64,000 nt of DNA from Epithemia pelagica. Taxonomy: Eukaryota; Protista; Bacillariophyta. The stretch lies in NCBI GenBank assembly GCA_946965045.2, contig OX337230.1, positions 1,426,001 through 1,490,000 on the forward strand, written 5' to 3'. Each line of letters begins with the position of its first letter. Position 1 is the first letter of the stretch. Shown here piece by piece: positions 8,989 to 62,100 of the stretch. A program made the position numbers and the translations under genes. The notes below the pieces were generated by a model. That model saw only the letters and a program-made list of their open reading frames with translations. It was not told the origin of the DNA and made no database searches.

Positions 8989-9049
8989 CTTATTGATGAT
9001 TGCCACATCCCAAAAGAGTTTTTGTGATGAGCAACGACCAACGACACAT

Positions 9050-9137
9050 AATATCTCGACGAATGATGTGCCAGTCGTGACTCAAAAGGCGAGTCCCGGT
9101 TTGTTGCGACCACCCATCGTGACTCAGAAAGGACTCC
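9050..9137 (+). repeat. Direct repeat copy 1 (~88 bp), carrying two TGACTCA motifs
   Basis: AATATCTCGACGAATGATGTGCCAGTCGTGACTCAAAAGGCGAGTCCCGGTTTGTTGC-GACCACCCATCGTGACTCAGAAAGGACTCC; matches 11284-11375 with 2 substitutions and one 4-nt indel. Confidence 0.95.
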
Positions 9138-9647
9138 CGGAAAGCTAACCATGAAGCTGACCGTTCACTGGCACGGCTAGCTTACTCGCGGTCACCCGCC
9201 TGCACCCCAGTCACCGCCCCCAGTCATTCATCTGCTGCGAAAGTTTTCGTGTATTCATAGTACGATTTTCTGTTTTCTGGAGTAGACTTTGCTTGCTTGG
9301 CTTCTGTGGCTGGGTTTGTTGTCATGTCCGAGGTGTCGGTATGGTAACCGTACTGACCTCTCTTCCTCCTCCTTCTTTATCCTAGGATAAGGCCTATGTA
9401 GTAATCCGATGAAGGATAACGTTTCATTATCTCCCGCCTCCACACAAGCAGAAACCCACATACAAAACAGCGCAGCAACGACAAACGACAACGTGTTGCA
9501 ACAACATCACCGGAACAGCAACAACGACGACCGACTGAGCATCAAACAGCAACACCAATAACAAGACACTCCACAGCGGCAACAACAAGAACAACAGCAG
9601 CAGCGACTTGCCGACGATACATCAACAACTGCAACAACAAAACCATC

Positions 9648-10931
9648 ATGTCTTCTTCAGTTGTTTGGGTTCAGCTCTACTACAATGGAACGGATAATCC
9701 GGAGGGCGACCCCATAAAAGTTAGTCCAGTACCTGATGATGTTGCCGACTTGAAAGGTATAGTGTACCCTCGAAAAAGCAAGTCTCTCCAACACTGTGAT
9801 CCTGATGATTTGATTCTCTTCCCACCGAAATCTTCTCGTGGCAAGAAAAAGTATAACGTAGGCAAGAAATTGGAAGAGTTAGTGGATGAGTTGAAGTATG
9901 CATCTACTCCCACATCCTTTGATAGCCCCTTGGTCGTGGTGGCACCCGATCCAAAGAAACAGCCGTCAGGTGACCCAGGCTATCCTTTCCATGACAACAT
10001 TTACCCGAACAAGCCGAGTACACGGAGACCGCCCTTGCCGCCAACTCCCGAGACCCAACAACAACAACAACAACCGCAGCAAACTGATCCCATGGTGACA
10101 AACGCCTTGCAGATTTTGAGTATTTCGATGGAGCGAAAAGCCGCATGTCGGATGTGGACCGGAGACCCGACGGTCTATGATTTGAAAGCTACGTCATACC
10201 AAGACTTCGATAAAGCAGTGAGAGCTAAGTATGCCTTTCTTGACGATGAAGAGAATATCTCTTACTATGTCATCAAGCAGAAACGTGATGTTAGTTCTCG
10301 CGCTTATATATCCAACGACGATGAGTTGAACGACTTCTTTGATCTCGCAGGGAAACCAACGATTATTATTTGGCCTCGTGGAAATCCGTCGTTATCTCCA
10401 GCCTCGCTGCCCTCTGAGATAGAAATACATCTTTCGAGTGCAGAGTCTGTTTCCGAGTCTTCAGGGTCCTCTTGCGGCTATGCGCAGACACTTTTTCGAC
10501 AAGCGGTGCGAAAGCGTGACGGAAATCAATGTGTTTTGTCCGGCGAGGTATTAAGACCGAAAGCGGGAAATGTGGAAGCGGCTCACATCTTCGGTATTGA
10601 AGGGTCTCTTTGTAGCCAACGAGATGCTGCTGGAGTGCTGAACGCCTACGATACTTTGAATGGAATGCTTTTGGAGAAGTCGTTGCATGTGGCCTTTGAT
10701 GCTTATGATTGTTGTAAGGATGAATTTCTGGTCGTTCACGTGTCTAAGGAGGGCAAGTGGCGAGGTCTGCAGCAGTGGGATGGTAAAAAAGTGAGACTCT
10801 CAGTCGGTTCCCCCCTTTTCCCGTCTAGAGAGCTTCTGCAGGCCCGTTTTGCCCTGTACAAAGAGAGGCAGAGAGGAGACAAGACCTCAGGGCCAGCCGC
10901 TCCACGACGCAGTGGACCAAAATCACTTTAA
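9648..10931 (+). CDS. Crinkler(CRN)-like protein: N-terminal ubiquitin-like header, Pro/Gln linker, PB1-like domain, C-terminal HNH endonuclease
   Basis: Header VWVQLY...GDPIKV...DVADLK...LQHCDPDDLILF. HNH motifs FRQAVRKRDGNQCVLSG, VEAAHIF and NGMLLEKSLHVAFD. Intronless. Confidence 0.85.
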   Translation: MSSSVVWVQLYYNGTDNPEGDPIKVSPVPDDVADLKGIVYPRKSKSLQHCDPDDLILFPPKSSRGKKKYNVGKKLEELVDELKYASTPTSFDSPLVVVAPDPKKQPSGDPGYPFHDNIYPNKPSTRRPPLPPTPETQQQQQQPQQTDPMVTNALQILSISMERKAACRMWTGDPTVYDLKATSYQDFDKAVRAKYAFLDDEENISYYVIKQKRDVSSRAYISNDDELNDFFDLAGKPTIIIWPRGNPSLSPASLPSEIEIHLSSAESVSESSGSSCGYAQTLFRQAVRKRDGNQCVLSGEVLRPKAGNVEAAHIFGIEGSLCSQRDAAGVLNAYDTLNGMLLEKSLHVAFDAYDCCKDEFLVVHVSKEGKWRGLQQWDGKKVRLSVGSPLFPSRELLQARFALYKERQRGDKTSGPAAPRRSGPKSL

Positions 10932-11283
10932 AGGTATTTTCTAATAGCCCATTTGTGGTTTCCATTGGGTTTTGGAGGTAATGAGGATATCTTGTGGCAA
11001 TACTAGTACCTCTCGTTTTGGCTGCTTGTTCCATCATTTCACAGACCGCGACAATGAGGATATCAGAAAGTTGAGCTGTTGGACTCGACGACCTTCTTGA
11101 TTCATTCTTGACTTGTTGTGTACCTTACCCTTGCAAACCTACTACTAGTACTTTGTTTGTGGATATCTTTTGACTCTGTTGTGAGGAAGGTATCGTAGAG
11201 TATCTTCTTGCTGCCATCTTCTCAACGGAGAGTTTTAACGGTCGAAGAAACGGGTGACCAACGACTGACGTCATTGAAATATC

Positions 11284-11375
11284 AATATCTCGAAGAATGA
11301 TGTGCCAGTCGTGACTCAAAAGGCGAGTCCCGGTTTGTTGCACGGGACCACCTATCGTGACTCAGAAAGGACTCC
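11284..11375 (+). repeat. Direct repeat copy 2 (~92 bp)
   Basis: Near-identical to 9050-9137 with an extra ACGG at 11342-11345. The upstream 10-mer GACCAACGAC is also shared (9036-9045 and 11256-11265). Confidence 0.95.
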
Positions 11376-11473
11376 TGGGTCCCGGGTTGTTCATGTTCGC
11401 CATGTTTATGTCACACTTTTCTGTCACACTTTTCTGTTGATGGTTTCGCTCCTAAGTTTTGGGAAGGTCAACC

Positions 11474-14400
11474 ATGAAGTTTCGGGCACTTTGGGTCGAC
11501 TATAGGAATGATGCCATTGTCCGGCTTCTTGCCGAAAGGGAAATGGAAGATGAGATTCCAATGGTGACGATTCGTGCCTCGGAACCGTTCCTGGATGACG
11601 AAAGCGATAGTGACAGCAGTGAAGATGCGGCTACCATCGGCGGGACTCCACAAGAGGAAGACGAGACCATGTCATTTACCAACGACTCCCCAATGGATGA
11701 ACAGCTATGGAAAGAGACATCCAACTCGAGCAATGATTTGTCATCTGAAAGAGAATATGTACCGGAATGTTGCGTCGACATAGTTCCCATCAATAACAGT
11801 AGCGTGAACCAACCGGCCGATCCCTCAGAAGAGCAGAAACAGTCGTTTTTATCTTCCAATCATCAGGATGATCTAAAGCTTGAACTGCTTGAACCGCTTC
11901 AGCCGGAAATCCAAGAATATCCCGCATTTATGCGAGAAGCTTGTTCGACATCACCAAGTTTCTTCCAAAGTTGGACCAAGAATCATAGTCGAAAGCTTAT
12001 CGCAAATGAACCATGGCATGAAAACATTCGTTCTTTACTATTCCGGCGTCACTTTCCTGTTCCTTCCCTTTCGGCATGGCTCCAGTTGGAGCTGGACTTT
12101 TTCAAGAAGATCAGATTTCTCTGTTCTGCAAGGTCTTGGAGACCGAACTTCATGGAGCACAGATCGACGACGACAGACGACCAGGATTGCACCCATGCCA
12201 ACAAGTTGAATGAAAAAGAACCGTCATTCAAGAAGATCCAGAAAAGAGAGTCTTTTTCATGCGAAACGCTTTCTCAGGACAAAACACATGGCAAGGAAAG
12301 TTCAATGACAAATTCACGTGCCATAGTTCCCTATGTTCCAGTGAAAAAGATGTCACCACCAGATCATGGAAACGAGACTGATCACGGAAAAATGCTTGGG
12401 TTCGTAAATATGATTGCTCAGCATATCGGAAAACAGGGTCTAATGCAAACGCCCATCAGTGGTAGGCACGCTGAAAAGGTGGAGGATCAACACGATCCAT
12501 CAGATGAATGTCTTGACGCTGCGACCATGCTTGGTTGTCCAACTTTGGCAGTTCCACACAAGCCACTTCAATCCAGGAAAGAGTTCGACCTGTTTACGCA
12601 GATCCCATCAAGCAGGAAGGAGCGAACGGGAGAGGGCGCGATAGGAGATCGAAAAGACACAGGCATCGCGAGGTTCAAGAAAAAGCCAAGGAACATGAAC
12701 GGGGCGAATACCGACAAAGTAAGTGAACGGACTGACAAGTTTTCCAGCAACGATGGGTTGAAAGCCCTGCTCATGACCGAAGAAATGGCAGAAGGTGGCG
12801 AAGCCACCAACGATGAACAGAAGGACGGTATGACAAACAGTGACGAAGCCCACGTACCCAAGAATGTAAATGCGAGAAAACGGGAAGTGTCCTTCGTGGA
12901 ACCATCATCTTCCCCAGCTGCCAAGATAGAAAAGCAGACCAGAAAGCGAAAGCGAAAAGAAGAGCGGAAAGAACGGAGACAGAAGAGACGCGAAAGGAAA
13001 GAAAGGAAAAGACTGGATCGTTCATCGCGGAAAGAACCCTTTCATGAAGAAACTCATGGAGAGGAAGATACCCGCGAGATAAGACAGGGCAAGTTGGATC
13101 GTGAGAAGGCTCCTGAAATTCAGTCCCATGATCACGAGTGCACCTCAAAGAGTATCGGACTTGTACAATCTGACGAGAGCCACAAGAAAAGTCACACAAT
13201 GCCGAAAGTCCTTCCTGAAAGAGGGATCGACGAAAAGGGTTCGACGATGCCATTTCTGATGGGTCTTGTCAGTGCCAGCCTTAAATCCAGTCAACTCCGC
13301 AAGAGCTTTTCTTTTCAGAACAAAGATACTTCTCGAGCGGAACTAAGCAGCCAGAATGTACCAAAGAGTAATCAAAAGCAAGAAAGGCAAGTGGTATCTA
13401 CTAATGCAGTACAGGGGGAAGTTCTTGATTCCGAAAGAGACAAGCAACCGCCTTGTACCAGTAACGAAACCAATAAAGAATCTCCGAGTAGGCTCCCATT
13501 GGGCCATATTCAAGTACCCAAGTCCGAGGAGCCAAGTTCTGCCAAAATAACAACTGTCATAAAGCCATCGGGCGACAAAAGGCCGTGCCCCGATTCGAAA
13601 GTGCAAACTAAGCCCATGCCCACATCTTCAACAAAACCACAATCCTTGAGTTCCATCAGGCCTCGGGAGCCTATGGCTTCGAAACTGAAATCATATTCAA
13701 GCAAAGATGCCGGTAACTTCCTTTCGCACACCGTCTCTAGAACAGGGCGACAACTGCTTCCCGGCGTTCGTGCTGTCAACAAGATGAATAAGTTCCCTTT
13801 TCGAGAAAGACCAAGTAACTCCCTAGTGGTACCCACCAAAACGATAGAATCATTCCAAAACCCACTACCAGTGGCTGGGCCAAAGAATGCACGTGGAGAA
13901 CTCAGGACAGCTCCGGACGTTGAATCGAATAAAATGAACCAGACGCTACCCACGCTGACAGCAAGGTCTGAGGGTACGTTTGAAGGATTGCTCACAGAAC
14001 CACCAAGGGATATCGTGGGCATGACAGTCTCAACATCAACAACGAACAACATCCCTCTATTTGAAGACATCCATGATGACCCGACAGCAATTCCCCCGAT
14101 AACAATACTGTGCGCTGAGGACTTCCTGGAGCGTTGGGGACCAATCGTGGCGGCTTTGTCATCCGGGAAGTGGTCGACGACTGAAAACCCGACAAGTGTG
14201 TTGATGTCACAGACAAGCTTACCATACACCAGCGCAAAAATCTTGGTTGAGGACAGCCCCCTTGTTGATCAGTGCAACGTAGACCTCGAGTTGCCTGGAC
14301 GGTCTGCTATACTTATAATTTCCACATCAATTCTTGTCGACGAATACTGCACAAAATCAATTGTGTTGAGGACAGTGGCACTGTCCGGCATAAATCGCTA

Positions 14401-43574: not shown

Positions 43575-45344
43575 TCACGTATGTTCGTTTTGTTGATGCC
43601 CTCGTGGCAAAGGTCGAATCGCTAGGAACTCGCCATGAAACTGGTAGGGTATATGGGAGGTCAGCTCCAGCACACACAGTTGCTTCATGGTCTTGGCATC
43701 CAGTATAACCACGTCCGACCGATGCTCGAGAGTCTTGTAGACGGAAACGATGACATAACCATCATCTTCACTAGTCGGTGATGCTTTGGGGACAAAGCTT
43801 GGTGCTCCTCCGTAATTTCCTGGTCCAAACGAAACAACCTCGGATGCTTTTCCCTCTTGCATATCAATCTTTTGGACGCCATTCAAGTAATAGGCAGATG
43901 GCTTCGAAAGTGCATTCACCCAACAGTAGCGTCGTCGATTTCCTGGTTTCCAACTGGCATGAATAGTGGGAAACTCGCAAGGCGCACAGTCACTCGCCAC
44001 GTCGGCATTGGAAAGGAACTCGGCCTCGCCGTCATTCTTTAGCAAGAATACATATTCTCGTAGTTTGGTATACACGCGTGTCCCATCCGGAACACGATAT
44101 TGATCTTTGAATTGCTTTTCCAGTAAGATTCGATCGGGTGGAAGGTATTCCGAGACTCGCACACGGAGTAGGATGGATCCATCTTGTTGTTCTTCCTCAT
44201 GGGCGTCCACTAAATGATACAAATTAATGGCTCGTGGGAGTCGTATTTGCCATTGCAATTTTAGATTGGAACGAGAGTGTACATGGACAAAGGTATCTCC
44301 CTTTGGATCCCATTCACTCAAATTTCCAATGGCCTCCAAGCCCAATACGAATTTGTACATGGACATGCCTGGCGTTTGTCGATAGGGTGGCAAAAAGTAA
44401 ACGAGGAAATTTTCCGACATTGTGGAATCATGGACAAAGGTATCGAAGGGCAAATCACAAGCTTCTTGTCCCAACAAGACTCCATCGTGAGTATACTTCA
44501 TGACATTGAGTTGAGTCGGACCGGGGCCAGTATTCAACATGTACCCATGATTGAATACCTCTCCCGTCATAGGACATTTGGAAAAGTGCGCAGAAAAGAA
44601 GGATTGCGCTTCACTTTTTCCATCTCGACTAGTCCACGGAAGATCCTCTCCGATCGTATCGGCCGTGTGAGGATTCAATTCAATCGGATTGCCTCCTTCG
44701 CACAAGGCATACAGTCGCGGCTGATCATGATGATCTGATGACAACCACAATGTGGCTGTATTGGCAGGATTCGTGGGAATTCGCAGTATATTTTCAAACC
44801 ATTCGCCTCGTCCTCTCAAGGTCCACGCACCGGCAAAGGCCAGAGGTGGGCGAACTTTCTCGTCGTCCTGGAGAGTACTCATAAGTTCTTCCTGGTCTCG
44901 AAAGCGATTCGTACGAACGTACTTGGCACAATATCGAGCTTGACCCTCTTGAAAACTCAATAATGTCACATAACCATCCCCATCAAACCAATGGCCGTAT
45001 TGAGAATCACCAATGCGGATTCTCCCCGGTCCATTTCCAGCAAGACACCCCACAAGGTCCGACGGGATGGAACCTTGTACAATTCGTGGACTATACGGAT
45101 CGACATCCGAGGCCGGTTCAAACCCACCACGATAGGGAGAAGCTTGAATCAGAGCCAATCGTTCTGGTGATGGCGGATCCGGTAACGCAAATGGCAACGG
45201 GCCATTCCAAAATCCATTCGATGGCGCAGTAGTCGAAAAGCCCAAGGTACTCTTAGAGGTGCAACTCAACACCAAGAGTAGCAATACAAAATCATGTCGG
45301 AACGACCAGAAGCGATGTGGTCGACAGCGAGCTCTTTGTATCAT
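43575..45344 (-). CDS. Carotenoid cleavage dioxygenase (RPE65/CCD family), plastid-targeted
   Basis: HWFDGDG, TNPANT, CEGG, and the four iron-ligand His in HWFD, SAHFS, FVHDS and YQFHG; EFP, PSFVP, EDDGY. Signal ends TLG|FST. ATG at 45344. Confidence 0.92.
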   Translation of the reverse strand: MIQRARCRPHRFWSFRHDFVLLLLVLSCTSKSTLGFSTTAPSNGFWNGPLPFALPDPPSPERLALIQASPYRGGFEPASDVDPYSPRIVQGSIPSDLVGCLAGNGPGRIRIGDSQYGHWFDGDGYVTLLSFQEGQARYCAKYVRTNRFRDQEELMSTLQDDEKVRPPLAFAGAWTLRGRGEWFENILRIPTNPANTATLWLSSDHHDQPRLYALCEGGNPIELNPHTADTIGEDLPWTSRDGKSEAQSFFSAHFSKCPMTGEVFNHGYMLNTGPGPTQLNVMKYTHDGVLLGQEACDLPFDTFVHDSTMSENFLVYFLPPYRQTPGMSMYKFVLGLEAIGNLSEWDPKGDTFVHVHSRSNLKLQWQIRLPRAINLYHLVDAHEEEQQDGSILLRVRVSEYLPPDRILLEKQFKDQYRVPDGTRVYTKLREYVFLLKNDGEAEFLSNADVASDCAPCEFPTIHASWKPGNRRRYCWVNALSKPSAYYLNGVQKIDMQEGKASEVVSFGPGNYGGAPSFVPKASPTSEDDGYVIVSVYKTLEHRSDVVILDAKTMKQLCVLELTSHIPYQFHGEFLAIRPLPRGHQQNEHT

Positions 45345-45814
45345 GTTGGAGTGATATTCCTTCCACAATGGCGCTTGGACACACACGGACGGGACGACAC
45401 TACCATCACCAGCAACTTTTCCGCGCGAGGGGCCCTATGAGCGACCCAAAGTCAGAAAAAGATAGAGAAGTAAGGTTACATGGCCACGATGCTGCTGGGA
45501 ACAAGCAGCTTTACATTCTGCACAACGCGAAATTCTTGAGCTTTATCTTCTTCGGTCCCACGATCATCACGTTCGATTCGGTACCAAACTCAGGATTCTA
45601 TCTACAAAATGGGTTGCTCAGGTCGGAATCGTTTTCATTGGAGCGACGACTAATGTTTAACTTAGATGAAGAAAGCAAAGGTCGTTCGGCACGATCTATT
45701 CAACAACCGGGCAGACGTCCCTTTGAATTTCGAACATACAACCTCCAATATCGAGTTGGACGACAAAGTATTGCGTAAACTCAAACGAGTGGTAATCCTT
45801 CCACACCGCTTGTC

Positions 45815-47513: not shown

Positions 47514-48437
47514 CTAAACGATTTGAGGCGACGCGTAATCGAGGCCGGTTTCGGTGCAACACGAGGATGGATACGTGTCATAGTCGGCGGTATGTCGGGC
47601 CATTTGACAAATGGTACAGCCACAGCAAAACAAACTGCAACACAAATCTTCACATCCGACACAATTCGTTTCGGGAATGGCATAGCGAGACCGAATGGCC
47701 GCACGGGTTCGAATGGTGATACAGAGAATCAAGAGCAGATAGGCCACGGTCAAGGCGCCCCGCAAGGCATCCATGGCATTGGCCCAGCCCGGAACCTCAT
47801 CGGGATAAATCACCCGACCACTTTCGGCGTCGTATCGGCCTTGAATGTAATCGTAGGTCAGATAGTAAAAGAAGGTATCCAAAAATTGGTACCCAATAAA
47901 GACGAGCAACAAGACTCGAAAGGCGGTCCAGAGTTCCGGTTGTTGCCTGGGTTTCACATCCTTTGTTTGGGGCAGGGGCGATGCCAGCCAATCCAATCGT
48001 AATCTCGTCAAGATTTGACCCAAGGCCAAGGGTGTCATCCAAATGGTCAAACAGAGTTGCGGATGACAACAGCCATGTCGACAACAATTCCAGGTGCCAT
48101 CGCGCCATTCTCCCACTGGAATGCTGTGGCCCACCGACAGCAATTCCTCCTCCACAACAACGACTGCCGCTTGAAAGGTTTGATTTTGTGTGACACCTCC
48201 TTCCGGGACTTGAACCAGGTAGGGTCGACCATGGACATGGACACGGAATTGGTAGCCCGCCGGCATATCGGCCGGTGCCACAATCTCCACCATGGAAGGA
48301 GGAGCCGGAACCACCACCACGCCATCGACAACGGGTGTATCCGGCAAGGGTTTGAAACTGGATGCGACCTGTAAGATGCCACCATGTTCGGACGAGGAAG
48401 CTTCGACGACAACGACTTCGCTCTCTTCTTTTCCCAT
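47514..48437 (-). CDS. PLAC8-family Cys-rich membrane protein
   Basis: GEWRDGTWNCCRHG...PLALGQILTRL and RTRAAIRSRYAIP...CEDLCCSLFCCGCTICQMARH. Probable ATG at 48437. Confidence 0.88.
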   Translation of the reverse strand: MGKEESEVVVVEASSSEHGGILQVASSFKPLPDTPVVDGVVVVPAPPSMVEIVAPADMPAGYQFRVHVHGRPYLVQVPEGGVTQNQTFQAAVVVVEEELLSVGHSIPVGEWRDGTWNCCRHGCCHPQLCLTIWMTPLALGQILTRLRLDWLASPLPQTKDVKPRQQPELWTAFRVLLLVFIGYQFLDTFFYYLTYDYIQGRYDAESGRVIYPDEVPGWANAMDALRGALTVAYLLLILCITIRTRAAIRSRYAIPETNCVGCEDLCCSLFCCGCTICQMARHTADYDTYPSSCCTETGLDYASPQIV

Positions 48438-49380
48438 GATAACAGTTGGTTCTTTCAGAGTATTTTCTCTTTGGCGCTCTCCGAGAACTGTTCGTCGGTT
48501 GAAATAATGGACTAAACCCAAATAGATTTTGGCTCCTCGTACGAGTTTGATGCACTTTGCGTCCTCCTCCTTGTGGTTGGACGCTAGTAGTCTTTTGGTG
48601 AGTCTTTCAATCCATACCTTGTTTGTTTCGTGCCTTCTTCTACACGACAATATATGAAGATTGGAGGGTTCGTCTGTTCCCTACTTTCGGATAATCGACG
48701 AGACGGTTGGCGAATTTTGTGGCGTGCCTTCATAATTCTTTGGAAGGAAACATGCGCCGTTGCTGTCCGTCGTTCGGATAAGAAGGGCTATTCTTGAAGC
48801 GCGAGCATGTCAGTATGTATGTGTAGGCTTATCCATTAAATACTTAACAATCTTGTTTTCCACACAGCGCAGCACGTGCTCACTCGTTTTTTGTACACGT
48901 CAGCAACTCCGATCGGTGCGCGACTTTGACCCTCACAAACCACAAAAAGTTCGCTTGAGGCACCCGGAAGTGGTGATGGTTGCTAAACACGTACTTGCAG
49001 TTTCTCCGATCAGTCACTTTTTCTCGATCTTTTTCATTGCTTCTTTCCTTGTTCTGTGAGGTGTGATCAAGATCAGGGGTATAGTCGAAGATTCACCAAT
49101 CCTCTTGAAGGGCGACCTTGGTTCGAACCTGTATCTTCGTAGACGGGGAATTGAAGAATCGCTATACTACAGCTCTTCCTCCAAGACGTTCCAGTTGTTC
49201 CAGGCAACCGGCGTGGACGAGTGTGGAGGGAAGAGGAATGCATACAACCACCATTTACACCCGCCCAATTGCATGACAAGCATGACTCTGAATCTATCCT
49301 TTGTGTTTCAACTCGCACCCACGTCCTCGTTCCTGGAATCCCATCAGTCTCATGACGAGCCGAGTTGCAACCCGTACACC

Positions 49381-52300
49381 ATGAAATCCCAAACGACGAA
49401 CCAACGACCTGTTCGACGACGACGACAACGACCGTTGAGTCCTTCCATGTCCCTCCAATGGCTCTGGCTTTTCTTGTTCACGGTCCAATTTTCACAAAAA
49501 GACACCTCTTTTCTTCACGGAGTGCAAGCCTTTTCCACTATTTCCCCTCCACCAAGACCTTTACCCTCGAGAACGCTCCTCCAGTTTTCGCAGCCCGGCG
49601 ACCGATTCGACACAGATGCCAACGACGACGACGAAAACTACCGAATCAATGGTGATATAAATGGTCAAGTCTTGAGAAGCAAAACAAGCACTGTCGACAA
49701 TCTACCAGCCGAGAACGATCCATCGTCACACGAAGAAGAAGAAGAAGAAGAAGAAGAAGAAGAAAACAACCACCATCCCCTTTCGACACTGGTGTATTAT
49801 CAACGACCCACCATTACTCCCTATCATATTCTTCATCCCCGAGTGTCACCCAAAATCTTGGGAGACGGGCCAGTGGAAGCCAGACCACTGTATCGGGTAC
49901 TGCTTCTCATGGAGCAAGCGCTCCGTTCCATGATGGAAACCTGCAACAGTGAGGATTTTCCGCCACTTGTTCGCATGGAGCATCCCATTGCTGTTGGCAC
50001 GGTCGATCCACTGGCTTGGATATCGGCTCAACAACAACGATTGTCCTCCACGCCACAATCGTATTTTTACTGTCAAACACAAGAAGAAGATTTGGAAGTC
50101 GCCGCGATTGGAGCCTTGCATACCTGCCATGCGACCGAGACCGTGTTGACGTATTTGGAACGTCCCGATTGGCCCCAGTCGAGTCGATGGTATGGAGGAC
50201 AACGGTTTGATCCAGACTCCCAACAGCAATCGGCAGAATGGAGTGACTTTGGATCCAACGCCTGGTGGATCTTGCCCACGATCGAAATGCGCCGGGAGGG
50301 CAATCAAACCATTGTCTTTGCGGTTCATGTACGTCCGGACAAGGTCCACGAAACCTTGAATCTGATTCAACAAATTTCCGACCAATCCATGGAACAACGA
50401 CCACCCACCACATTGCCTCCTCTCCTGTCACGGAGTACCCACTACCAAACCGCAGATGGACTGGTACAGGATGGCCAAGAGTTGTATGAGGAAGCCGTTG
50501 CCAAGGCCATTGACGCCATGGACAAACGCAACGACCAGAAAGACGATCATCATCAAGTCTTGAAAAAGGTGGTCCTTTCCAGAGTTCAGAGAATGCAACT
50601 GGGTGTCAACGATTTCTGTGCCTTGGCCGTACTGCGTCGGTGGAAATACGGAGGCAACGAAGGTGGTCACTTGTTTTGGATGCAACCTGGAAGGACTTGG
50701 AGTCCACGGTCGCGCCCATCTTGTGAATTCTTTGGGTGTGCACCAGAGCGTTTGTTCCGTGTACAAGCGACGGACAGTAGCAATCCGCGGGTGCAGAGTG
50801 AGGCTTTGGCTGGCACCCGACCTCGAGGATCCACCATTGCCGAAGATGCCAAACTTCTTCAAGAGCTTCTCGAATCGCCCAAGGACCGTCACGAAAACCA
50901 AATCACGGGAGATTTTATTGCACGCGTATTTTCAGAAATGACTCAAAAGGGCATGATTCTTTCGGGGAAATCACCCGGCTCAACAAAGGATCCTTCAGGT
51001 CAAACGGAAGAGAGCTCAAACTTTTTTGTTCGTCGTCTGTTGCACCTTCAGCATTTGTGTCAATCCTTCAATGCCACTCTGTCACATCCAAGTCAGGCAT
51101 TGAATGTAACCCGATTCATGTTATCGAATATGCACCCTACACCAGCAGTTTGTGGAGATCCGCTCATCCCTGCATTGGATTTTATTCGGAAATACGAGTC
51201 TGTTGGCTTTGACCGCGGCTTCTACGCTGGACCTATCGGCTACGTGGGCCGGGATGCCAGTGACATTTTTGTTGCTCTCCGATCTGCTCTCCTTACCAAA
51301 GACGAGAATAACAAACAACCTCATGACCGTGCGACGCGTCATGCCGAATCTTCTCTTTTGGTATACGCTGGCGCTGGTATTGTTCCGGGATCAACCGTGA
51401 AAGGAGAATGGGCAGAAACAAACTACAAGCTCGCCGTCATCTCGTCGGTTTTCCCGCAGTCACCGATGACGCTTCAGGGCGCTCCAACCCCGAACGTAGC
51501 ATGGGCTGCAGCATTCTTGGAGGAACTGATCCGAAACGGTGTGACGCAATTCTACGTTTGTCCGGGATCGCGATCGACACCTCTTGTGGTGGCACTTTCT
51601 CGGGCAGCTCGATCGCGAGTTGGCGTTGTTCAGGTGACGAGCGTCCACGACGAGCGATCGGCAGCGTTCCGAGCAGTCGGCTATGCAAGAGGGTCCAACC
51701 GTCCTGCCGCGGTCGTCACGTCGAGTGGCACGGCGGTAGCTAATCTGTATCCAGCAGTCGTGGAGGCGGGAATGGATGGGGTGCCTCTTTTGCTTCTGAC
51801 CGCTGATCGACCCTACGAAAGCCGCGATACTGGTTCAAACCAAGCAATTGATCAAGTCAAGGTATTTTCTAGTACCTACATACGCTGGTTTCGAGATATA
51901 CTTCCACCGTCGGACGATGTCCCAATCTCTCTGGCACTCTCAGACGCTGGACACGCCGTACGAGTTGCTCGGAATCAACGGGGACCTGTTCATGTGAATA
52001 TTCAATTCCGCGAGAACCTAGCACCCGATGCAGGACCAGTTCGAAACGATGATAGGATCAATCCAGGAGCACGTTTCAACGCTCAACGTTTTACTGAGAC
52101 ACCGCATTTCGAAAGGTGGTCGATTTCAGGAAGCACATATGGGAGAGAAATGAAGTCGTTCTCGTACTCCCAAGAGAGCGAAGCTGCAAGAGAGCTATCA
52201 CGAATGATTTCAAACTCGAGGCGAGGAATAATTGTCGTTGGTAACGTTCGATCATCTTTGCTAGATGACGCTGAGTCTCACAGCTCCATAGCCGATACAA

Positions 52301-55300
52301 TCTCTGACTTTGCCCAACAAACTGGTTTTCCTATTTTTGCGGGCGTTCAGCAAGTTGCTCTTCGATTTAGGAGCCCAGCCGTCGTTCTTTTTGCGGAGCA
52401 TCTTCTCAAATGCCCTGCAATTGCCAACAATCTGAAACCTGACCTTATCATTCAAATTGGATCTCCGCTTGTATCCTCGGAAGTGCCGGCAATGATTGAA
52501 AGATCTTCTAAAGATGCAGAGAATGAAACCAACCATGTTCTGATTCATTCATTCACGCCTTCAGAGAGAATCGATCCAATGTTCACCGTTACGCATCTTA
52601 TTTCCGCAGATTGCCCTGTTTTTCTAAAAGCGGTCATGTCACAATTAGACGGTCACTGCGGAAGCGAACTGAGTCCATTAGTGGTTTTGGGCAAACGCTT
52701 GCAGGGGCAAATGAAGTTGATTGTCCAGAAAGCTTCTGAGGACCTTCTGACCGAGGATACCGGTATTTCCGAACCACAGATAGTCATGGCTATTGCTGAG
52801 TCATACCTGGAGGGTTCAGATAATTCTATTTTTCTGTCAAACTCAATGCCGATAAGAGATTCTGAGTTTTTCCTGTACCCTCTTTCTGACAAAGTCAGCA
52901 ACATCTCTTTCACCACAGGATCAAACAGAGGCGCAAGCGGAATAGACGGGATTGTTGGTAAGTGGCGACTGACTGCAACATGGTTTCATAGTTCCTTTAA
53001 CTGCCCTGTGCCTCATGAAATTCACTTTCGATGCAAAAATGGGGATGGATCAATGGATGTGATATCTGGGGATGGACGGATGTAGCATCGGCCGCTGGCT
53101 TTGCCGAGGCAACTGCCAAACCAACAACACTGGTTGTTGGAGATGTCTCAACGTTGCACGATATCGGGTCCTTTCATAATCTTGCAGAACGAACAAGGTC
53201 GTCGAAACACGGACAAAGTAAGCGACCACACCCACTTACAACCTTGGTTGTCAACAATGATGGTGGAGGTATTTTCTCCTTTCTCCCAATTGCACGCCAT
53301 GGAGACGATGTCTCATTTGACGAATTATTTGGGACTCCAACAAATTCTTTCTCCTTCCAAAAAGCTTGCGAAGCCTTCGGGCTCCCATACAGAAAAGCAA
53401 CAGAGATGGGCACTTTGACAAAGACACTTTCTAAGTTTTCGCCTGGTGGTTTATCCAGTCTTGTCGAGGTTGTGGTTGCGTCGAGAGAGCAAAACGTTTT
53501 GATACACAAGCGAATATCGAGGGATGTCGCGAGTTACGTCGATCTTGTTCTGGCCTCCGATTTATCAGCCGGTACTTATCCACATCGTAGCTACGTGAAG
53601 AGCTACTCAAACGACTTTCAGAGGCCTCCGGTTCTGGAAGAAAAGAAAACCGTTGTTCTATTGCATGGCTGGATGGGTGACAAGACTGACTGGGACGAGG
53701 TCGGTCTATGTCTTTCTGGCATGTTACCCTCCGGTTGGTCGGTCGAGGCTGTTGATCTGGTCCAATATGGAGAAGAAAGCCAAAGTGTTTCTGTGGATAC
53801 TGAAATCCTTCGTCGCTCTCTCTGCCTTCCTCTCCAACAGCCGGTCGGTGATCTATCTGTCGGTGGTATCGCTGAGACGGTTTTGAAGTCTTTAAGAAGT
53901 CACGGCGTGACAAAAGTGGATGCTCTTGTTGGATACTCCCTGGGAGGACGCGTTGCACTGAACATTGTCGATCGATTTTCCTCTGCTGGTGGTCTAATTC
54001 ACAATGACACTAGACTCGTCTTACTCAGTTCATTTACTGAGAGCAAGGGTACAGAGCAATCGCAGGACTCAATCTCAAGGAAAAGTAGAGATGACCTGAT
54101 AGCCCAGGCCATTCGGAATCGTTGGTTAAAAGCATGTTTGTATAAATGCCCAACACGAAAAGTCCTCTGTTGGGATGAATTCTTGGAGAACTGGTATAGT
54201 TCGCCATTATGGGCTGAAATTGATTGCAATCCAGGTTTCCCCGAAATGAAGAGGAAGCGCTCCATGATCCTGGAGGGCCATGGAACAGAACTGGCAGAGA
54301 TCCTGTCTTGTTGTTCTCCTCCCAGGAATGTTCGATCGGTCGACTCGAAGGGGTTTCCAACCCCGACATTCCTTGTCGCGGGAGAGTTGGACAACAAATA
54401 TTGTGAGCTCATGATGCGTTGGCTGGAAGAAAACAAAGGACAAACTAAGTTCGACAAAGTGAAGGGAGCTGGACATGCAATTCTCCTTGAGAATCCTTTG
54501 GTTGTAGCGGAGAAAATTGCTGATTTCCTTCAGAGAAAAGATGCTCTCCCGGATCACCATAGTTGTGAGGATTCTCCTTCAGCTCCCTGCTCGAAATTTG
54601 CTGAGTCCTCTACTCTGAATCCAGATGTAATAGAAGGTTCCGTAGGAAACTTTAAAGCAAGAACGAAGCGCTTCACCTTGGAAATGGTGGATTCGTCTGG
54701 TCGCAGGAGCTCCGTTTCTGGACTCGGGTGGGGCGAGCGGGCAATCAAGTCGAGCAAATTGGCATCACGTAATGGCCTTCTTCTTCAGCTTCAGTCCACT
54801 GGATGTGGTAGTGTTGGACTAGGAGAGATTTCACCTTTAAAAGGAGTCCACGATGAAAGCTTGGAGGACGTGATTGTACAGATTCAAAAGGTACAAGCCG
54901 TTCTCGAACGAGGAGGGGATGAGGTTAATATAGACCCTCGGAAAACCCTTGAACTTCGTGGGTACTTGAGCGACTGGATTCATGAACAATTTTCTGGTAT
55001 CCAATTGTTCCCTTCCGTTCGAGCAGGTGTAGAAATGGCGCTGCTTGGTTTGTCTGCACACAAGCTTGGAGCCCCCTTGTATCAGGCGATTCTCCTCTAT
55101 GCGTTCGGTCGTGAATGCCTTCAAAAATCCTGGGTCGAGCTTAATGGTTTTATGACAAGAATGCCATCGCAAGGCTTCGAAGCTTCTTACAACTTTAGAT
55201 CAACGAAGGTCAAGGTTGGCCATCGTTCTCGGAACGAAGATATTGATGCCATCGTTGCCTCTCTTGGTCAGTTGGACGCCACCGTCGGGCGCGAGAACGG

Positions 55301-56540
55301 AAATCTCCGACTTGACGCCAACCGATCATGGAACAGAACTGAGGCTAAGAGTTTCGTGGACGGTTTAGAAGAATTGAGAATTCATGATCGAATTGATTTC
55401 ATCGAAGAGCCATTGTATTCCGTTGGTGGAGTAAGTTTCAAGAGTCACGTTGCTTCTCTTGAAGAATGGTCCCACCAGGTCAATATACCGTACGCCCTTG
55501 ATGAATCAATCGCCGAACTTGCGTTTTCTCATGGATTCAAGTTTTCGTTGATTGAGAAAGAGATGCTACATGTATTCAAAAGTGGTCAACGCGGATGCGT
55601 GGCACTTGTTTTGAAACCCTCTTTGCTCGGAATGGAATTATCCATACAAATTGCTCGTCTCGCTCGGCAGAAGCTAAAAATGGGAGCTGTATTCTCGTCT
55701 TGTTTTGAAAGTGGTACTGGACTTGCACACGTCGGATCGTTGGCCGCTGCCTCTGATGCCATCGAAAGTGAGGCTTGCAGTTTTTCTCACGGACTTGGAA
55801 CATATGTACTTCTTGGAGGCGACACCATCACACCTCCTTTCTCTTCTTATGTGAATGGCAGAGGAATGCTAAACATAGCATCCATATCCCGTGCCATGTA
55901 TGGTCTGTCTCTCGATGAAATGGCAATTGAGGACGACGTATCGAATCTCATCAATGAGGAGACAATTGTTGAGGAATTTGGGAGCGAAGAAGATGAACTT
56001 AGTACTATCGTTTCAATCGATCTCCCTTTCTCAGCCAAAACAGCTCATTCCCGATTCACAGATCTTCCCCAGCAACCAAGGTGGTCCCCGTGGTTGAGCA
56101 GTGTTTCGTACCAAGGAGAAGAATCGGAATGGAAAATAAATATACGTGGAATACCTCTGAGATGGCGTGCAAAGAGTCAACTTATGACCAATCCATGGTT
56201 GGGAATCCAATGGGAATCTGTTTCCGGTGTGCCTAATCGTGGAAAAGTTGAATTCATTCCAAAGAACAGTGAAACATGCCAGATGAAAGTATGTATTGCC
56301 ATAATCCCACCTCGTGTTTTGAATCCACTTTTTCGGAGAGCAAAGTCTCTCGTTTTGGAAGACTTCATAAGTAACAAGATTGTCAAGTGGTCATTGGAAA
56401 TGTTTCGAGACGTGGTAAAAGCGGATTTAGCTATCGAAAGTGGAGATGTGGAGCTGGGTGATGCATTGTTCGGAGCAGTAGAAGGCAAAGCAACAGCGAT
56501 CGAAGAAACGCTGAAATTTTCCTCAAAGACGGGCGAGTGA
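49381..56540 (+). CDS. PHYLLO: PHYLLO-type multifunctional phylloquinone biosynthesis protein: MenF-MenD-MenH-MenC plus a C-terminal SRPBCC/polyketide-cyclase domain; exons 49381-52957 and 53086-56540 (2343 aa)
   Basis: MenF: ALAGTRPRG, HPTPAVCG, RGFYAGPIG, YAGAGIV. MenD: CPGSRSTPL, DERSAAF, TSSGTAVANLYPAVVEA, TADRP, SNRGASGIDG. MenH: HGWMG, GYSLGGR, GELD, GHA. MenC: GEISPL, KVKVG, RLDAN, IEEP, ALDES. Intron G|GTAAGT...TGTAG|CA (128 nt) restores GIDGIVASAAGF. Signal ends VQA|FST. Confidence 0.95.
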
Positions 56541-57324
56541 AGAGAAAGCCTGCCCGACACGCTGGTGTCCATCGTTGGGTTCGGACAAGGCCTGAGAAAA
56601 GACCTTTGTTCTTGGTCCCTCAATGGATTCGTCACATGATGGACTGCTTAGATGTCTTGCATGCCCAAAAGTGCTCACGAAAGCAAGCGACAGATCTTCT
56701 TCAGATCCCCCTTTAGGTCACTCAGTTGAATATTTAACGAAGAAACTGATGATTATCCATATATATCCGTCATGTTTGCTCTAGACTCCGGACAACCCTA
56801 AACCCTAAATTGAGACTCTGCAGACCATGGGGGACATATAATGAGCCTATGCTCTGAGAGATACCTATTAAGCATTGAGAATTGAGAACAAAAATAGAAA
56901 AGGAAGGCATGAATTTCATTTATTCAAAGTTTTCAACCCTACAAATATTCTCTCACCGGGCACGAGTAGCTCGGCCCCGCGTCGCAATAGCTACTAATAG
57001 CAATGATAGGAATACGGTTACGCTTTCGTCGCAACGTCCAGACTATGGTCTGAACTATGGTCAACCTTGATAGCTTTAAGCTTTCGAATCGACTGGTTGG
57101 AGGAGTTCTTCTCCCACCTCTAAGTATCCAGGATGAAGGGTATAACAGCGATCATGTTAGGATACCACTTCAAGCTCGAAATCGGATTCAAGCTAGTGGT
57201 CGTGTGACCGGACCCGAAGAACCAATCATACTGAGAGATAAAAAAGGATTGTTCACGACAAGGTTGACCATCCCGTATGGTATCTATGGATGAAAAAGCC
57301 CAGACGATCTCGTAGTATTATAGA

Positions 57325-58140
57325 ATGAGGGCTTCCGTTTTAAACGTAGGTTTGTATCGTTCAGGTTCGACTAGCCTCGCCACCGCTGCGGCCATCGGCG
57401 GATGGCGAGTCTACCGCGAATTTCCCTCGCTGTCAAAACAAACTCTCAGGCACATCCTTTTGGACCCCACTGTCGCTGTCAAGGAATGGTGGTCAAGCAA
57501 TGGCAAACACGAGATGCTCGATCTGGTCAAGACTTATGATCTTGTGGGGGACGGGTTTGTTTCTTTGTTCCCATTCCTGCCTGTCGACGAGATCCAATCT
57601 TTCGTCAAGAATGCCATGAGAGAGGGAATCAAAATTATTTTTGTCGCAACTCAGCGTGGTCTAGAGCAGACGGTCTTGTCAGAACTTCATCACTGGGTTC
57701 GAGAAAACCTGGAAGAACGAACCGGATTGTCAGTCGAGAACCGATGCCTTCTAGAAGAGAATCTAAGAGTTAGAGCAGAGCGTCATCAAAGAAGACTGGA
57801 GACATTTCCCTGCGATCTGGTAATCCTGAAGCTTGAGGAGAAAAGTGAGTGGGCATACAGCCTCGAGCGACTCTTCGGTCAGGTTAAAGAAGAAACGAAA
57901 CCGATCGACTGGAACAAAGCTCTACAACAGGCAGGCCATCAAAACAAGAACCCTCCTCGACCTGTGGAAGGAGTGCTCCTCACAATGCGTATCGGAAACG
58001 ATAGTCAAGAGGCAAAACTCAAAATATCTCGCCTTCTGTCGAGTTTGAACCAGGACAAGCTGTGCCAATATCAATTGACGAGCGACTTTAACTTGGCCGA
58101 CAAGTCTTGCTTGGTGGACCGTTCGACGCACATAGAGTAA
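57325..58140 (+). pseudogene. P-loop sulfotransferase-like gene, apparently 3'-truncated at ~58068
   Basis: PAPS-binding-like VLNVGLYRSGSTSLA and YDLVGDG. A second domain starts (VEGVLLTMRIG...DKLCQY), but the frame then runs into the antisense of a ZMAT2 fragment. Confidence 0.6.
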
Positions 58141-58460: not shown

Positions 58461-61400
58461 TTGTTTAGTTTTGTGTTTATTTTACGCTCTAGTGTTTGGG
58501 GGAACTTCTAAGCGGTGAGTTCGCAGAGAAGTGGGGCGGTTGCCGTGGTGGGCAGGTAGTGTTCCATGCTGGCCGGGGAGTAGATCGGAGTTATCGGTGC
58601 AAAGTGTGGCCGTGAAAGATTTTGCAATTGTGTCGTTCGTTTCTGTCTGGTGGTGTGATATTGGTGGATGGCTGTCATGCGGTTGTTGACATGGACTGCC
58701 AAGCTTGTGACGATGGCGTGGCTGAGGGATGCCTTGGCAAAGTGTCCCATAGAGTATATATGGGCTTCTGGGTAGCAAAATTTTTTTGTCTCCTTGTTGG
58801 CGGCTGTGAGAAGGTTGGCTGGGGCGTGAGTGGTTTCTTGAAAGAGTGCGAAAGCTTGTGGGTGTGCACTGCTGCGATGACTGTTTTTTCCGAAGTGTGG
58901 GTCGTTCCACGTTGGCGGTTTGGCTGGATGAAAGAGGTGTGGTTGGTGTTCACTTGGGAAAAGGAGGTTTTCAGCAAAAGAACCTAGTCCTCCTAGGTGA
59001 TCGACCGTAAAGGGGAGGAGGTATACCCCGTTGTCGTAGAGGTGTTGTGCAGTGGTGGGGTCTCGACAGAATTTGTCACGTGCTGCGTCCTGGTGCGTCT
59101 TGGAGGCCATACAGGCAATGTTTTCGTGGTCAGACGGGTCCAGGATTGGCAGTGGTTTCTGTGGAGGGGGGACTGTGATATCGATAGCGGTGTATCGAAA
59201 GTGCTGGTTTCTGTGTGGTTGTTTCAGAAGCATGCCGACGTGCGCTGGTCGGATGTTTCGGCTGTGTTGTGGAGCCAGGCCTGGCGGTTCAACATGTACG
59301 TCCAGGCTTGTGTCCACTGCTTTTGCTGCGGGGGCTATTTGGCGAAGGACATCAAACAGGGTGTCTCTGATAGCATTCGATAGGGGAGTCTTGGAGGTGG
59401 CGCTGCACGAAAACAAGTGGTCCCCTTGTGCGTCAAGTGTCGTTTTCTTTGCACATTTGCAAGATTTCGGAGCCAGTTGGTTGGGGTCATGGGAGAACAG
59501 AGGTAGACGTAATTTTCTCCTCATGGCGGGTTTGAAGACCGCGTTATCAAGTCTGAATTTGGAGGCTGTCAGCGGTAGGGAAAAGGCCATGCTTGTGAGT
59601 GGTGAAAGCAGTGAAGGTAAGAAGATGCGTTGGTTTGTGTCTGTTATCGTGAACAGTCTTTCGATGGCGTGTTCTCTCATGATGTGGTTCATCATGCTGT
59701 TGTGTGTGTGTCGGTCATACCGAGATGGGGTATAGAGGGCTTCGTCTGCCAGTTCGTGTGCAAAAAACGAGAGGCCTTTTTGGAATTTGGTCGTGGTTGG
59801 TGTGGTTGAGTCTTCCCAGTTTTGGAATGGCCGGCTGTGGACGGCTGGAATTGCTGTGTCCGTGGACGACGCAAGGTTGATTGCTCGCACGGTCTGAGTG
59901 AGAAATCGCGGGTATGCTGCGGAGGAAGCCATTTGGTATCCAAGGCCGCCTAGGCGTTGAGGGAGAGACGCAATAAATTGTCGCTGTTTCGTTTACGTCC
60001 GTGTCTCCGGTGGAGGTAAGACGGGCAAGAAAACGCGCTGTCAGTTTGTCGGTTCGTCTTGTGGTGTCGCTGTGGCACATTGTTGATCGTTGGTCTCCTG
60101 CGGGATTGACAAGGGTGATGTCGGATGGGAGCAAGTGCATGATTGACGCAACCAAAGAGAATTTGTACAGCGTGTGCTGCGTTTGTAAGTTTTGGAGTTG
60201 GCTGATTCGGTCCATTGTGTCGTCCATTTTTTCTAACCTTTCGCTGATGTATTGTTTTGCAAATTCCTGGGAGCCGATTGGCTGTCCGAGGAAACGGACT
60301 CCTGTGGTGATTTCGGCCCGTTCTGGTTCTTCAGGGCAGAGGAAGGATAATGCTTCCTGTACGTGTTGTTGTGCTTGTCGGGGCAATGTGTCGCAGGCTG
60401 TGTTGCCGGTTGTTGTTGTTAATATTTTTGTTTTGGAGTGATTGAGGATGATCCCGAGTGGTGCTCCAAGTTGTTGGAAGCGGGAAAGGAACCATGGTAG
60501 GTCACAGTGTGGTAAACAGACGGACGTGTCGTCCATGATCGAGGCCGTATGAGCGACTCCACCTTTGTTGTCGTCTCCGGTGTCCCCTGACTGTTTTCTT
60601 GTTGCTGCACATTTTGCTTGTTCTTTGTTTAACTGGTTCGTGAGTGCCAGAAGGACTAAGCACGAGAACAGTGGACTAAGTGGGCACCCTTGTGGGAATC
60701 CCTCTTCTTGTTTCAGTGTATTTGGTTCGTGGTTTTCATCGAAGTACCACGAGTCGCAGGGGTGGTTGGTGAGAAGGTCAAAGATCGGGACCAGAGGGCA
60801 AGTCGCTTCCTCTGAGAGGAGTATTTTTCGCGCTTCGGTACGCAACACATTGTTGAACATATTTGTCAGGTCAAGCAATATGAGCGCTCTGCTTGGGGAG
60901 TTTGTTGTTGTTTTTGATTTTGTTTTGTTTTGGTCGTCGTTTTGTTCGTCGGTTGGTTCTTCTTTGTTGTCTGTGTGTTTGTCAATATATTCCCGAACCG
61001 CCATGGCGGTGGTCTGGGCGACAAAGTCAACCCCGCCTGGGATTTGGATCCCATACTGTCCGCCCTTGAGGAGAAGTGGCGTGATGTCGTCCGTCATATG
61101 GACCAGAGCTGTTTTGGTGGCATCTCGTCGAATCGCCGTTCCAATTCCAATCGGTCGTAATTTTTCTGGGTTTGTGATGTCCTTGTGCAGCGCCAAGAAA
61201 TAATTGCTGGCAAGTATTGTTTGGATCGGTGGAGGTACCTGAGCGGTCACCACTAGTTGGAGGAGAGCTTTGATGTTTCCGAAGTATGGCTTGGTGGCGT
61301 CTTTCACTCTTGTTGTTCGGTGTAAAGCCATGGCGGCTAGTATGTCCGTGCATGTGGCGAACAGTCCCGATGCCGTTCCTGGTTTCATTTGTCGAAGTGC

Positions 61401-62100
61401 TAGTTCTGTCATGTTGTCTTCTAACATCAGGAACTGGTTTGTTGGTGGCGGTAAGTTGGTTTGGCCTTGTGCTCGTGTACCAGGTGGTGGTTGTCGTCGT
61501 TTTGGGAAAAGTTCTGTCTGACATCTTGCGATTCTTGGTGGGGTTAAGGTTGCTGTTGGAGTATTTGTCGTCAGTCTTTTGAGTGCTGCCCGGTAGTTTC
61601 CCAGGTCGGCGGTGTGTTGTGCCGCGGTGAGTCTCCATTGTTGGAGGTTTGGACCGTCGCTGTGGGTGTTCAGTCGTTGTTTCTGTTGTTGTTTTTTCTT
61701 GTGTTGTCTGTTTCGTGGTTTTAGCGGCAGTGGTGTTGGGTGCCAAATTGTGTTGTACAGTTCCTCGATTCTTCCTGTTGTGAGCAGGGAAATTCTGGCT
61801 CGGAAAGCGTTTGAGTATGTCAGGTGGACGGTGTTTTGGATGGGGGCCAACAGTAATGGTTCCAGGAGGAGCAATAGCTTCCAGAACGGGCTGGAGTCGG
61901 TCTCGTGTTTGGGTAGTGTGCGATCACGGAGGATTGCTGGGGCCAACGTCGGCATTGATTCGAGGACCCATTTTATTACGTTGTTATACGTGACATAGAA
62001 TTCTGAACGGAGTGGAGGTTTGGTTTGTGTAAAAGTCGAGAAATTGCTTTTGGTGGGGTACCCCCAAGTAGGGGTGAGTGGTCGCATGTGTGTCGTGCTT
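58461..62100 (-). mobile_element. Non-LTR retrotransposon, CRE-like (RT + C-terminal restriction-like endonuclease), frameshifted at ~59980; 5' boundary uncertain
   Basis: LRPIGIG, GQYGIQIPGG, LDLTNMFN, GFPQGCPLSPL, IMDD, GVRFLGQPIG; SLPQRLGGLG across the frameshift; CCHC knuckle CKC...GDHLFSC; RPAH...AIDITV. A-rich 3' end AAAATAAACACAAAACTAAACAA and a strong A/C-rich sense-strand skew. Confidence 0.88.

Follow-up and report, generated by a model that had tools for sequence, protein, structure and literature searches.

A conserved SRPBCC/START helix-grip domain as the fifth, C-terminal module of the diatom PHYLLO protein

The 3' part of the long open reading frame analysed here almost certainly encodes, in identity as in architecture, the fifth and C-terminal module of the diatom PHYLLO protein, and this module is confirmed as a helix-grip domain of the SRPBCC/START superfamily. 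The gene lies in a 64,000-nucleotide stretch of Epithemia pelagica DNA (contig OX337230.1, positions 1,426,001 to 1,490,000; the whole stretch is called the window below) and spans two exons, with Pfam and NCBIfam matches across both giving the module order MenF-MenD-MenH-MenC-SRPBCC, in agreement with the earlier note, which had placed a fifth domain after MenC in PHYLLO. In plants and green algae, as summarised in papers that cite Gross et al. 2006 (PMC13452876, PMC2412073), PHYLLO combines MenF, MenD, MenC and MenH in one plastid protein making o-succinylbenzoate; by these summaries it has four modules in the order F-D-C-H, whereas the diatom protein has F-D-H-C plus SRPBCC. The five-module architecture is already published. 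Gross, Meurer and Bhattacharya (2008, BMC Evol Biol 8:117; PMC2412073) described a diatom pentamodular fusion, 'men FDHC duf (COG5637)', for Thalassiosira pseudonana and Phaeodactylum tricornutum, in which menC comes after menH and the fifth module, named in the Methods only, is a domain of unknown function. The window gene is an orthologue of this fusion: its MenH likewise precedes its MenC, and the extra module at the 3' end is the same. The 2008 paper does not deal with the SRPBCC fold, origin, conservation or taxonomic limits of the module. New here are the conservation of the module, the origin of its clade, its cyanobacterial kin, its absence from Triparma and a helix specific to the fused copies. 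Our literature search found no paper naming the fold of the module or testing its function.

The gene is assembled from two long plus-strand open reading frames, 49063-53085 and 53031-56540, which differ in frame (Table 1). The first matches Pfam Chorismate_bind (144.5 bits, MenF) and TPP_enzyme_N (78.5 bits, the N-terminal part of MenD) and carries the PHYLLO start methionine at ORF residue 129, base 49447; the splice at 52958-53085 rebuilds the MenD motif GIDGIV-A-SAAGF, as read from the sequence. Counted from this methionine, the exons, which were searched separately, add up to 6963 nt or 2321 codons, a length inside the 2244-2345 aa range of full-length PHYLLO homologues. The leader, a hydrophobic stretch ending in VQA followed by F, looks by eye like a candidate diatom bipartite plastid signal. 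The 1169 codons of the second frame run uninterrupted from MenH and MenC via an acidic linker into a module of 185 aa, and across homologues (n=138) the distance from the end of MenC to the start of SRPBCC has a median of 39 residues and a range of 10-110. In alignment to E. coli MenC structures the catalytic motifs LDAN, EEP, DES and KP(S/T)L are all kept, as are the metal ligands and catalytic lysines. The MenC motifs being intact, the module is therefore no substitute for MenC, and the idea that it stands in for a dead enzyme is ruled out.

Table 1. Features of the PHYLLO gene in the window (nucleotide positions are those of the window; ORF residues refer to ORF 53031-56540)
Feature	Position	Strand	Content or basis
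PHYLLO exon 1	49447..52957	+	start codon, leader, MenF (isochorismate synthase), MenD N-terminal and middle parts
Intron, 128 nt, GTAAGT...TAG, joining the two ORFs in frame	52958..53085	+	sequence reading
Exon 2 start, MenD C-terminal TPP-binding part	53086..53642	+	phmmer homology to full-length PHYLLO MenD
MenH (alpha/beta hydrolase, SHCHC synthase)	53643..54533	+	Pfam Abhydrolase_6, ORF residues 208-494
MenH, NCBIfam menH_SHCHC	ORF residues 205-501	+	E 5e-23
MenC (o-succinylbenzoate synthase)	54744..55835	+	Pfam MenC_N and MR_MLE_C
MenC, NCBIfam menC	ORF residues 573-909	+	E 6e-32
Glu/Asp-rich acidic linker, MenC to fifth module	55836..55997	+	translation
SRPBCC/helix-grip core, module residues 6-152	55998..56438	+	PF03364, AlphaFold2, Foldseek, atlas matches
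Extra C-terminal helix, module residues 156-177	56448..56513	+	AlphaFold2 model, conservation
PHYLLO stop codon TGA	56538..56540	+	sequence
Segment duplicated ~16 kb downstream, beyond the window	56162..58077	+	BLASTN, 96.2% identity over 1918 nt

The reading of the earlier note that the frame stays open from MenC through the acidic linker into the module holds for ORF 53031-56540, which has neither a stop nor a new leader there, and the signature peptides that it quoted are present in this frame, after MenC and the Glu/Asp-rich linker. In this frame a codon begins at 55992, the 55990 given earlier being two bases off, and the alignment of the module starts at 55983. The RNA evidence at the locus is sparse: no contig from public RNA of Epithemia pelagica bridges the MenC-module junction or the intron, and two metatranscriptome contigs map to the locus, at 56319-56618 and 56435-56709, the former identical to the window and with three mismatches to the downstream duplicate. 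The other public runs are DNA-like, because their contigs keep the intron 52958-53085, and public-run assembly contigs break at 56162-56210, the duplication boundary. A gene-model artefact, with the module encoded by a gene of its own further downstream or by an alternative transcript that happens to share the frame, would fit an RNA coverage confined to 56319-56709 that leaves the junction unbridged, and would fit also some diatom gene calls that list the module as short 'partial' proteins (P0115, P0119). It is nevertheless hard to reconcile with a translation that has no stop, start context or hydrophobic leader between MenC and the module, with a free paralogue that has its own leader peptide where the PHYLLO module has none, and with the same fusion in 134 sequences, among them transcriptome ORFs of other diatoms. 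We regard such an artefact as very improbable.

Taken alone, the last 182 residues match PF03364 Polyketide_cyc with 28.6 bits (E 1.8e-6, gathering cut-off 23.4; in the full ORF the match covers residues 999-1112), while the score for PF10604 is below its cut-off. The AlphaFold2 model of the 185-residue module, built from an alignment of 27 homologues, has a pLDDT of 88.3, a pTM of 0.83 and the beta-alpha-alpha-beta6-alpha topology; its elements E-H-H-E6-H-H-H are a strand, two short helices, six strands, a short helix, a 32-residue helix and an extra helix. Over this extra C-terminal helix the mean pLDDT is 96 and 91 in residues 151-170 and 79 in residues 171-180. Foldseek against the PDB returned hundreds of START/SRPBCC structures at probability 1.0, including 3p9v, 5z8o, 3ggn, 2d4r and the PYR/PYL abscisic-acid receptors, with Maqu_3174, MSMEG_0129, DR_A0006, TTHA0849 and ZhuI among the matched proteins named and the COXG-family structure 2ns9 also present. 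Pfam, AlphaFold2 and Foldseek thus agree on the polyketide-cyclase/START fold proposed from the sequence by the earlier note. The best match in a predicted-structure atlas was a cyanobacterial SRPBCC cluster (TM 0.74 by query and 0.89 by match, rmsd 1.7 Å), and a streptophyte 'polyketide cyclase/lipid transport' cluster was found at TM 0.73 by query; a language-model atlas search gave generic Polyketide_cyc clusters only. In NCBIfam neither the module nor its cyanobacterial relative nor the free paralogue is assigned to a family.

The fusion is widespread in diatoms. A search with the module inside its 1169-residue context collected 88 proteins, all with MenC, and with MenH where length allows, in which the order is H-C-S, the module is C-terminal in 88/88 and identity is 48-71%; in total 134 fused sequences were gathered. 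Their named sources are Cylindrotheca, Pseudo-nitzschia, Odontella, Thalassiosira exigua, Cyclotella cryptica, Bacillariaceae and Fistulifera solaris, both centrics and pennates among the diatoms. Skeletonema menzelii, found through a search with MenD, has the module as well; short module fragments come from Phaeodactylum, Fragilariopsis and Ditylum, and MMETSP transcriptome ORFs of other diatoms hold MenC plus the module, or all five (P0081, P0083, P0019, P0317). An exhaustive profile search of 1.84 billion representatives separated two tiers, fused sequences of up to ~2500 residues that match the whole profile at 220-320 bits, and free-standing ones of 180-335 residues that match profile positions 2-150 only, at 120-165 bits. 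The label 'variant' used in the earlier note does not fit an architecture found in 134 fused sequences and published in 2008 (PMC2412073): judged by this sampling, the fusion is the standard diatom form.

Beyond the diatoms the picture changes. The PHYLLO proteins of Triparma verrucosa and T. laevis have the order F-D-H-C and end 26-41 residues past MenC, without the module, and a six-frame search of 8 kb either side of T. verrucosa PHYLLO found no module, the window giving 290 bits as positive control. We take Triparma to belong to the Bolidophyceae, the sister group of diatoms. The survey of the fusion suggested earlier was thus positive for centric and pennate diatoms and negative for Triparma. 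The next PHYLLO relatives, with the order F-D-H-C, and a further group of database homologues with F-D-C-H, are both without the module; the two orders coexist in public homologues (P0341-P0376), in separate well-supported clades of the MenD tree. In the same tree the basal nodes are not resolved: Triparma belongs to a polytomy there together with module-bearing sequences on long branches, Fistulifera among them. The apparent restriction to diatoms is drawn from the sequences with a named source, from the contrast with Triparma and from the single clade of fused copies described below, and a single gain of the module on the diatom stem is consistent with these data, though not proven by them. 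At the T. verrucosa locus (BRXX01000065.1; L006:3685-7021, minus, and 8001-13481, plus) the four-module PHYLLO adjoins AMP-binding (MenE-like) and ECH_1 (MenB-like) genes on the opposite strand, possibly a eukaryotic men gene cluster.

The tree of module sequences points to a parent for the fused form. All fused copies group in one clade (SH-aLRT 100) that lies among the free-standing paralogues of eukaryotes, the outgroup being cyanobacterial proteins of 145-151 residues; by this tree the closest relatives overall are free-standing diatom paralogues, named examples of which come from Eucampia and Helicotheca. The Epithemia pelagica genome has three module matches, namely the PHYLLO module, a free paralogue and a truncated duplicate. 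The free paralogue, a 333-residue ORF on another contig (L005:1099-2100, plus strand; G000:C1, match 3125609-3126073), has its own hydrophobic leader and is without the extra C-terminal helix; it is also of unusual composition, with long Asn, Thr and Gln runs. The truncated duplicate (L004, G000:C3:1496647-1500027, match G000:C3:1498147-1498527), which lies ~16 kb downstream and outside the window, consists of the last 126 module codons plus ~1.5 kb of downstream DNA and retains an open 132-codon frame that corresponds to database protein P0125. The module would accordingly have a single origin, in which a free-standing plastid SRPBCC gene was duplicated and one copy fused behind MenC.

The nearest prokaryotic kin are 148-aa cyanobacterial SRPBCC proteins, not COQ10; the cyanobacterial 145-151-aa proteins match the module at E 4.6e-14 to 7e-10 with 28-31% identity. 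The parent free-standing family is, as far as these matches tell, of cyanobacterial type and corresponds to COG5637, JGI naming homologues 'uncharacterized membrane protein', which we take to be the COG5637 name. The gene for one member, P0155 from Gloeothece, immediately follows a gene to which the NCBIfam model of 9,9'-di-cis-zeta-carotene desaturase gives 913 bits, and this neighbourhood hints that the ancestral family had to do with carotenoids or prenyl lipids; on the opposite side of this locus (L002:1228-3218, plus strand) are a TetR regulator and a glutathione S-transferase. As slr0940 is a zeta-carotene desaturase, this synteny makes the cyanobacterial relatives candidates for the slr0941 type. 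Synechocystis slr0941 and its plant homologue At1g02475, putative members of the family of the module, are reported in one paper to occur in cyanoglobule and plastoglobule proteomes, proteins of their type being reported from lipid-droplet proteomes (PMC12223511, PMC9725166) and an At1g02475 homologue from the tomato plastoglobule proteome (PMC9725166); on the function of slr0941/At1g02475 our literature search returned proteome tables only. The cyanobacterial 148-aa proteins, and putatively those of the At1g02475 type, are homologous to the module, with an invariant core in common, but they are free-standing, lack the extra helix and are not men-linked.

The earlier note proposed that the domain could bind or channel a naphthoquinone intermediate, possibly in a COQ10-like role in vitamin K1 synthesis, and binding of this kind would be plausible for the fold. 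In the form weighed here, a COQ10-type chaperone would take finished phylloquinone, or such an intermediate, to where photosystem I uses it. COQ10, PasT and CC1736 belong to the same superfamily and Pfam family as the module and are likewise small helix-grip domains thought to hold an isoprenoid quinone, and UniRef names some module fragments 'COQ10 START domain-containing'. There is also a precedent in CoxG, a START protein that shuttles menaquinone, a naphthoquinone, to a soluble enzyme complex (PMC13525633). CoxG (Rv0369c-type) resembles the proposed module in having a START domain serve a soluble complex, but it stands alone as a protein anchored in the membrane and belongs to another Pfam family, so that the likeness is one of fold and proposed role. 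The COQ10-type proteins in turn are free-standing, serve respiratory ubiquinone use and show no specific sequence affinity to the module: a PDB profile search to E of up to 1 found only chains of Deinococcus DR_A0006 (E 4e-5), an uncharacterised protein, with no COQ10-type chain among the matches, and the nearest kin are of the cyanobacterial/plastid type. The likeness to COQ10 hence does not extend to orthology. Moreover, the module is tethered to four early, soluble-phase enzymes and not to MenA or MenG, and a domain tethered on a 2321-residue protein is an unlikely stoichiometric courier. We consider a COQ10-type role unlikely.

Within PHYLLO the module is the most conserved part. Across 39 full-length proteins its mean pairwise identity is 68%, the highest of all modules, against 57% for MenD-N, 53.5% for MenF, 51% for MenD-C, 47% for MenC and 40% for MenH. 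Residues D27, W34, W37, V41, W50, W61, W77, S79, G82, N85, G87, F91, P110 and F141 are invariant in the fused, free and cyanobacterial groups together, and the motif WES-G-NRG is common to the module and its cyanobacterial and plastid relatives. These shared invariants alternate along the strands in the pattern expected of a pocket face, and from this i, i+2 conservation we infer an internal hydrophobic ligand cavity. Most of the residues invariant in the fused copies only belong to helix 132-152 or to the extra helix (~154-177), the latter being nearly invariant among the fused copies and gapped in the free eukaryotic and cyanobacterial relatives. Such a distribution, on the last and extra helices and not on the strands, would suit a purely structural or assembly element, acting without ligand in oligomerisation or in docking between modules; yet the family-wide Trp/Ser/Asn core is invariant in the fused clade too, which argues for a kept pocket, and we think a ligand-free element improbable. 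Predicted docking of the module to MenC scored 0.00, which counts neither way.

Whether the pocket might be catalytic was weighed separately. A cyclase/dehydratase-type enzyme aiding naphthoate synthesis, for example in a dehydration/aromatisation step or as stand-in for a missing DHNA-CoA thioesterase, is suggested by a Pfam family named for polyketide cyclases and dehydrases, by the aromatase/cyclase ZhuI among the fold matches (3tfz, a weak match with TM 0.52 and 12% identity), by several invariant polar residues in the core, and by a cryptophyte survey that identified no dedicated DHNA-CoA thioesterase (PMC9244630). Against it, the CYC/ARO enzymes are defined in a review by a conserved Arg and a tryptophan pair (PMC13525633), and the strand motif of the module reads, by eye, W-R-A-x-S rather than W-x-W, apparently without that pair. 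The core residues are, besides, common to cyanobacterial and free plastid relatives without men linkage, and MenC keeps its metal ligands and catalytic lysines. In Phaeodactylum a MenB homologue carries a peroxisomal SKL (PMC9244630), so the CoA-dependent steps are probably outside the plastid, and this makes a module acting on CoA intermediates less likely. An enzymatic role seems to us improbable, as does a ligand-free one.

Our preferred reading, tentative and at a little below even chances, gives the module no catalytic role: it would bind an aromatic or prenyl-lipid ligand and localise or regulate PHYLLO. PHYLLO would be a plastid-targeted polyprotein of ~2321 residues turning chorismate into o-succinylbenzoate for vitamin K1, and the module a helix-grip pocket rich in invariant tryptophans and not an enzyme. 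Since the aromatic core is retained, we argue that the pocket is retained as well, with a naphthoate, a naphthoquinone or a phytyl/prenyl lipid as candidate ligands. Ligand binding would link the early, soluble part of the pathway with the lipid phase or with a metabolite further downstream. In one version PHYLLO would be placed at the surface of thylakoids or plastoglobules; in the other the module would act as a feedback sensor. From the conservation of the outer helices in fused copies only, a new protein contact is argued, this surface on the last two helices probably docking the module to another protein surface. Against this best explanation, the products of the PHYLLO steps are soluble acids needing no lipid carrier, and many of the invariant residues are polar (R24, R33, E49, S65, S79, N85, K132) and would suit catalysis too.

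No men gene cluster was found around PHYLLO in the window, which has no MenE- or MenB-like neighbours; the neighbours are a carotenoid-cleavage-type oxygenase, a PLAC8 protein and a reverse transcriptase. Upstream of PHYLLO, the minus-strand ORF 43578-45386 (603 residues) scores 298.9 bits as RPE65/carotenoid-cleavage oxygenase, and the 378-residue PLAC8 ORF immediately upstream (47517-48650, minus) overlaps long ORFs on both strands. The 790-residue ORF at 59718-62087 (minus) has an RVT_1 domain and is probably a retroelement, which may be related to the nearby segmental duplication.

Photosystem I uses phylloquinone as its A1 electron carrier, PHYLLO is the committed entry enzyme to phylloquinone synthesis, and diatoms account for a large share of marine photosynthesis. 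With the architecture in print since 2008, the contribution made here is a sharper hypothesis and an evolutionary framing rather than a discovery: the most conserved part of PHYLLO in diatoms is a putative ligand-binding domain. It is possible, though we think it doubtful, that sensing or shuttling a naphthoate or naphthoquinone (DHNA, demethylphylloquinone, phylloquinone) is the dedicated task of the module. If so, vitamin K1 synthesis in diatoms would be product-controlled or membrane-coupled, the module would be the first case of a START domain that handles a quinone from within an enzyme of quinone synthesis, and a ligand class would be suggested for the related cyanobacterial and plastid family. 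Once the ligand is known, it would be clear how a line of four soluble enzymes is linked with a lipid end-product, and this might also tell what the related free-standing proteins do in cyanobacteria and plastids.
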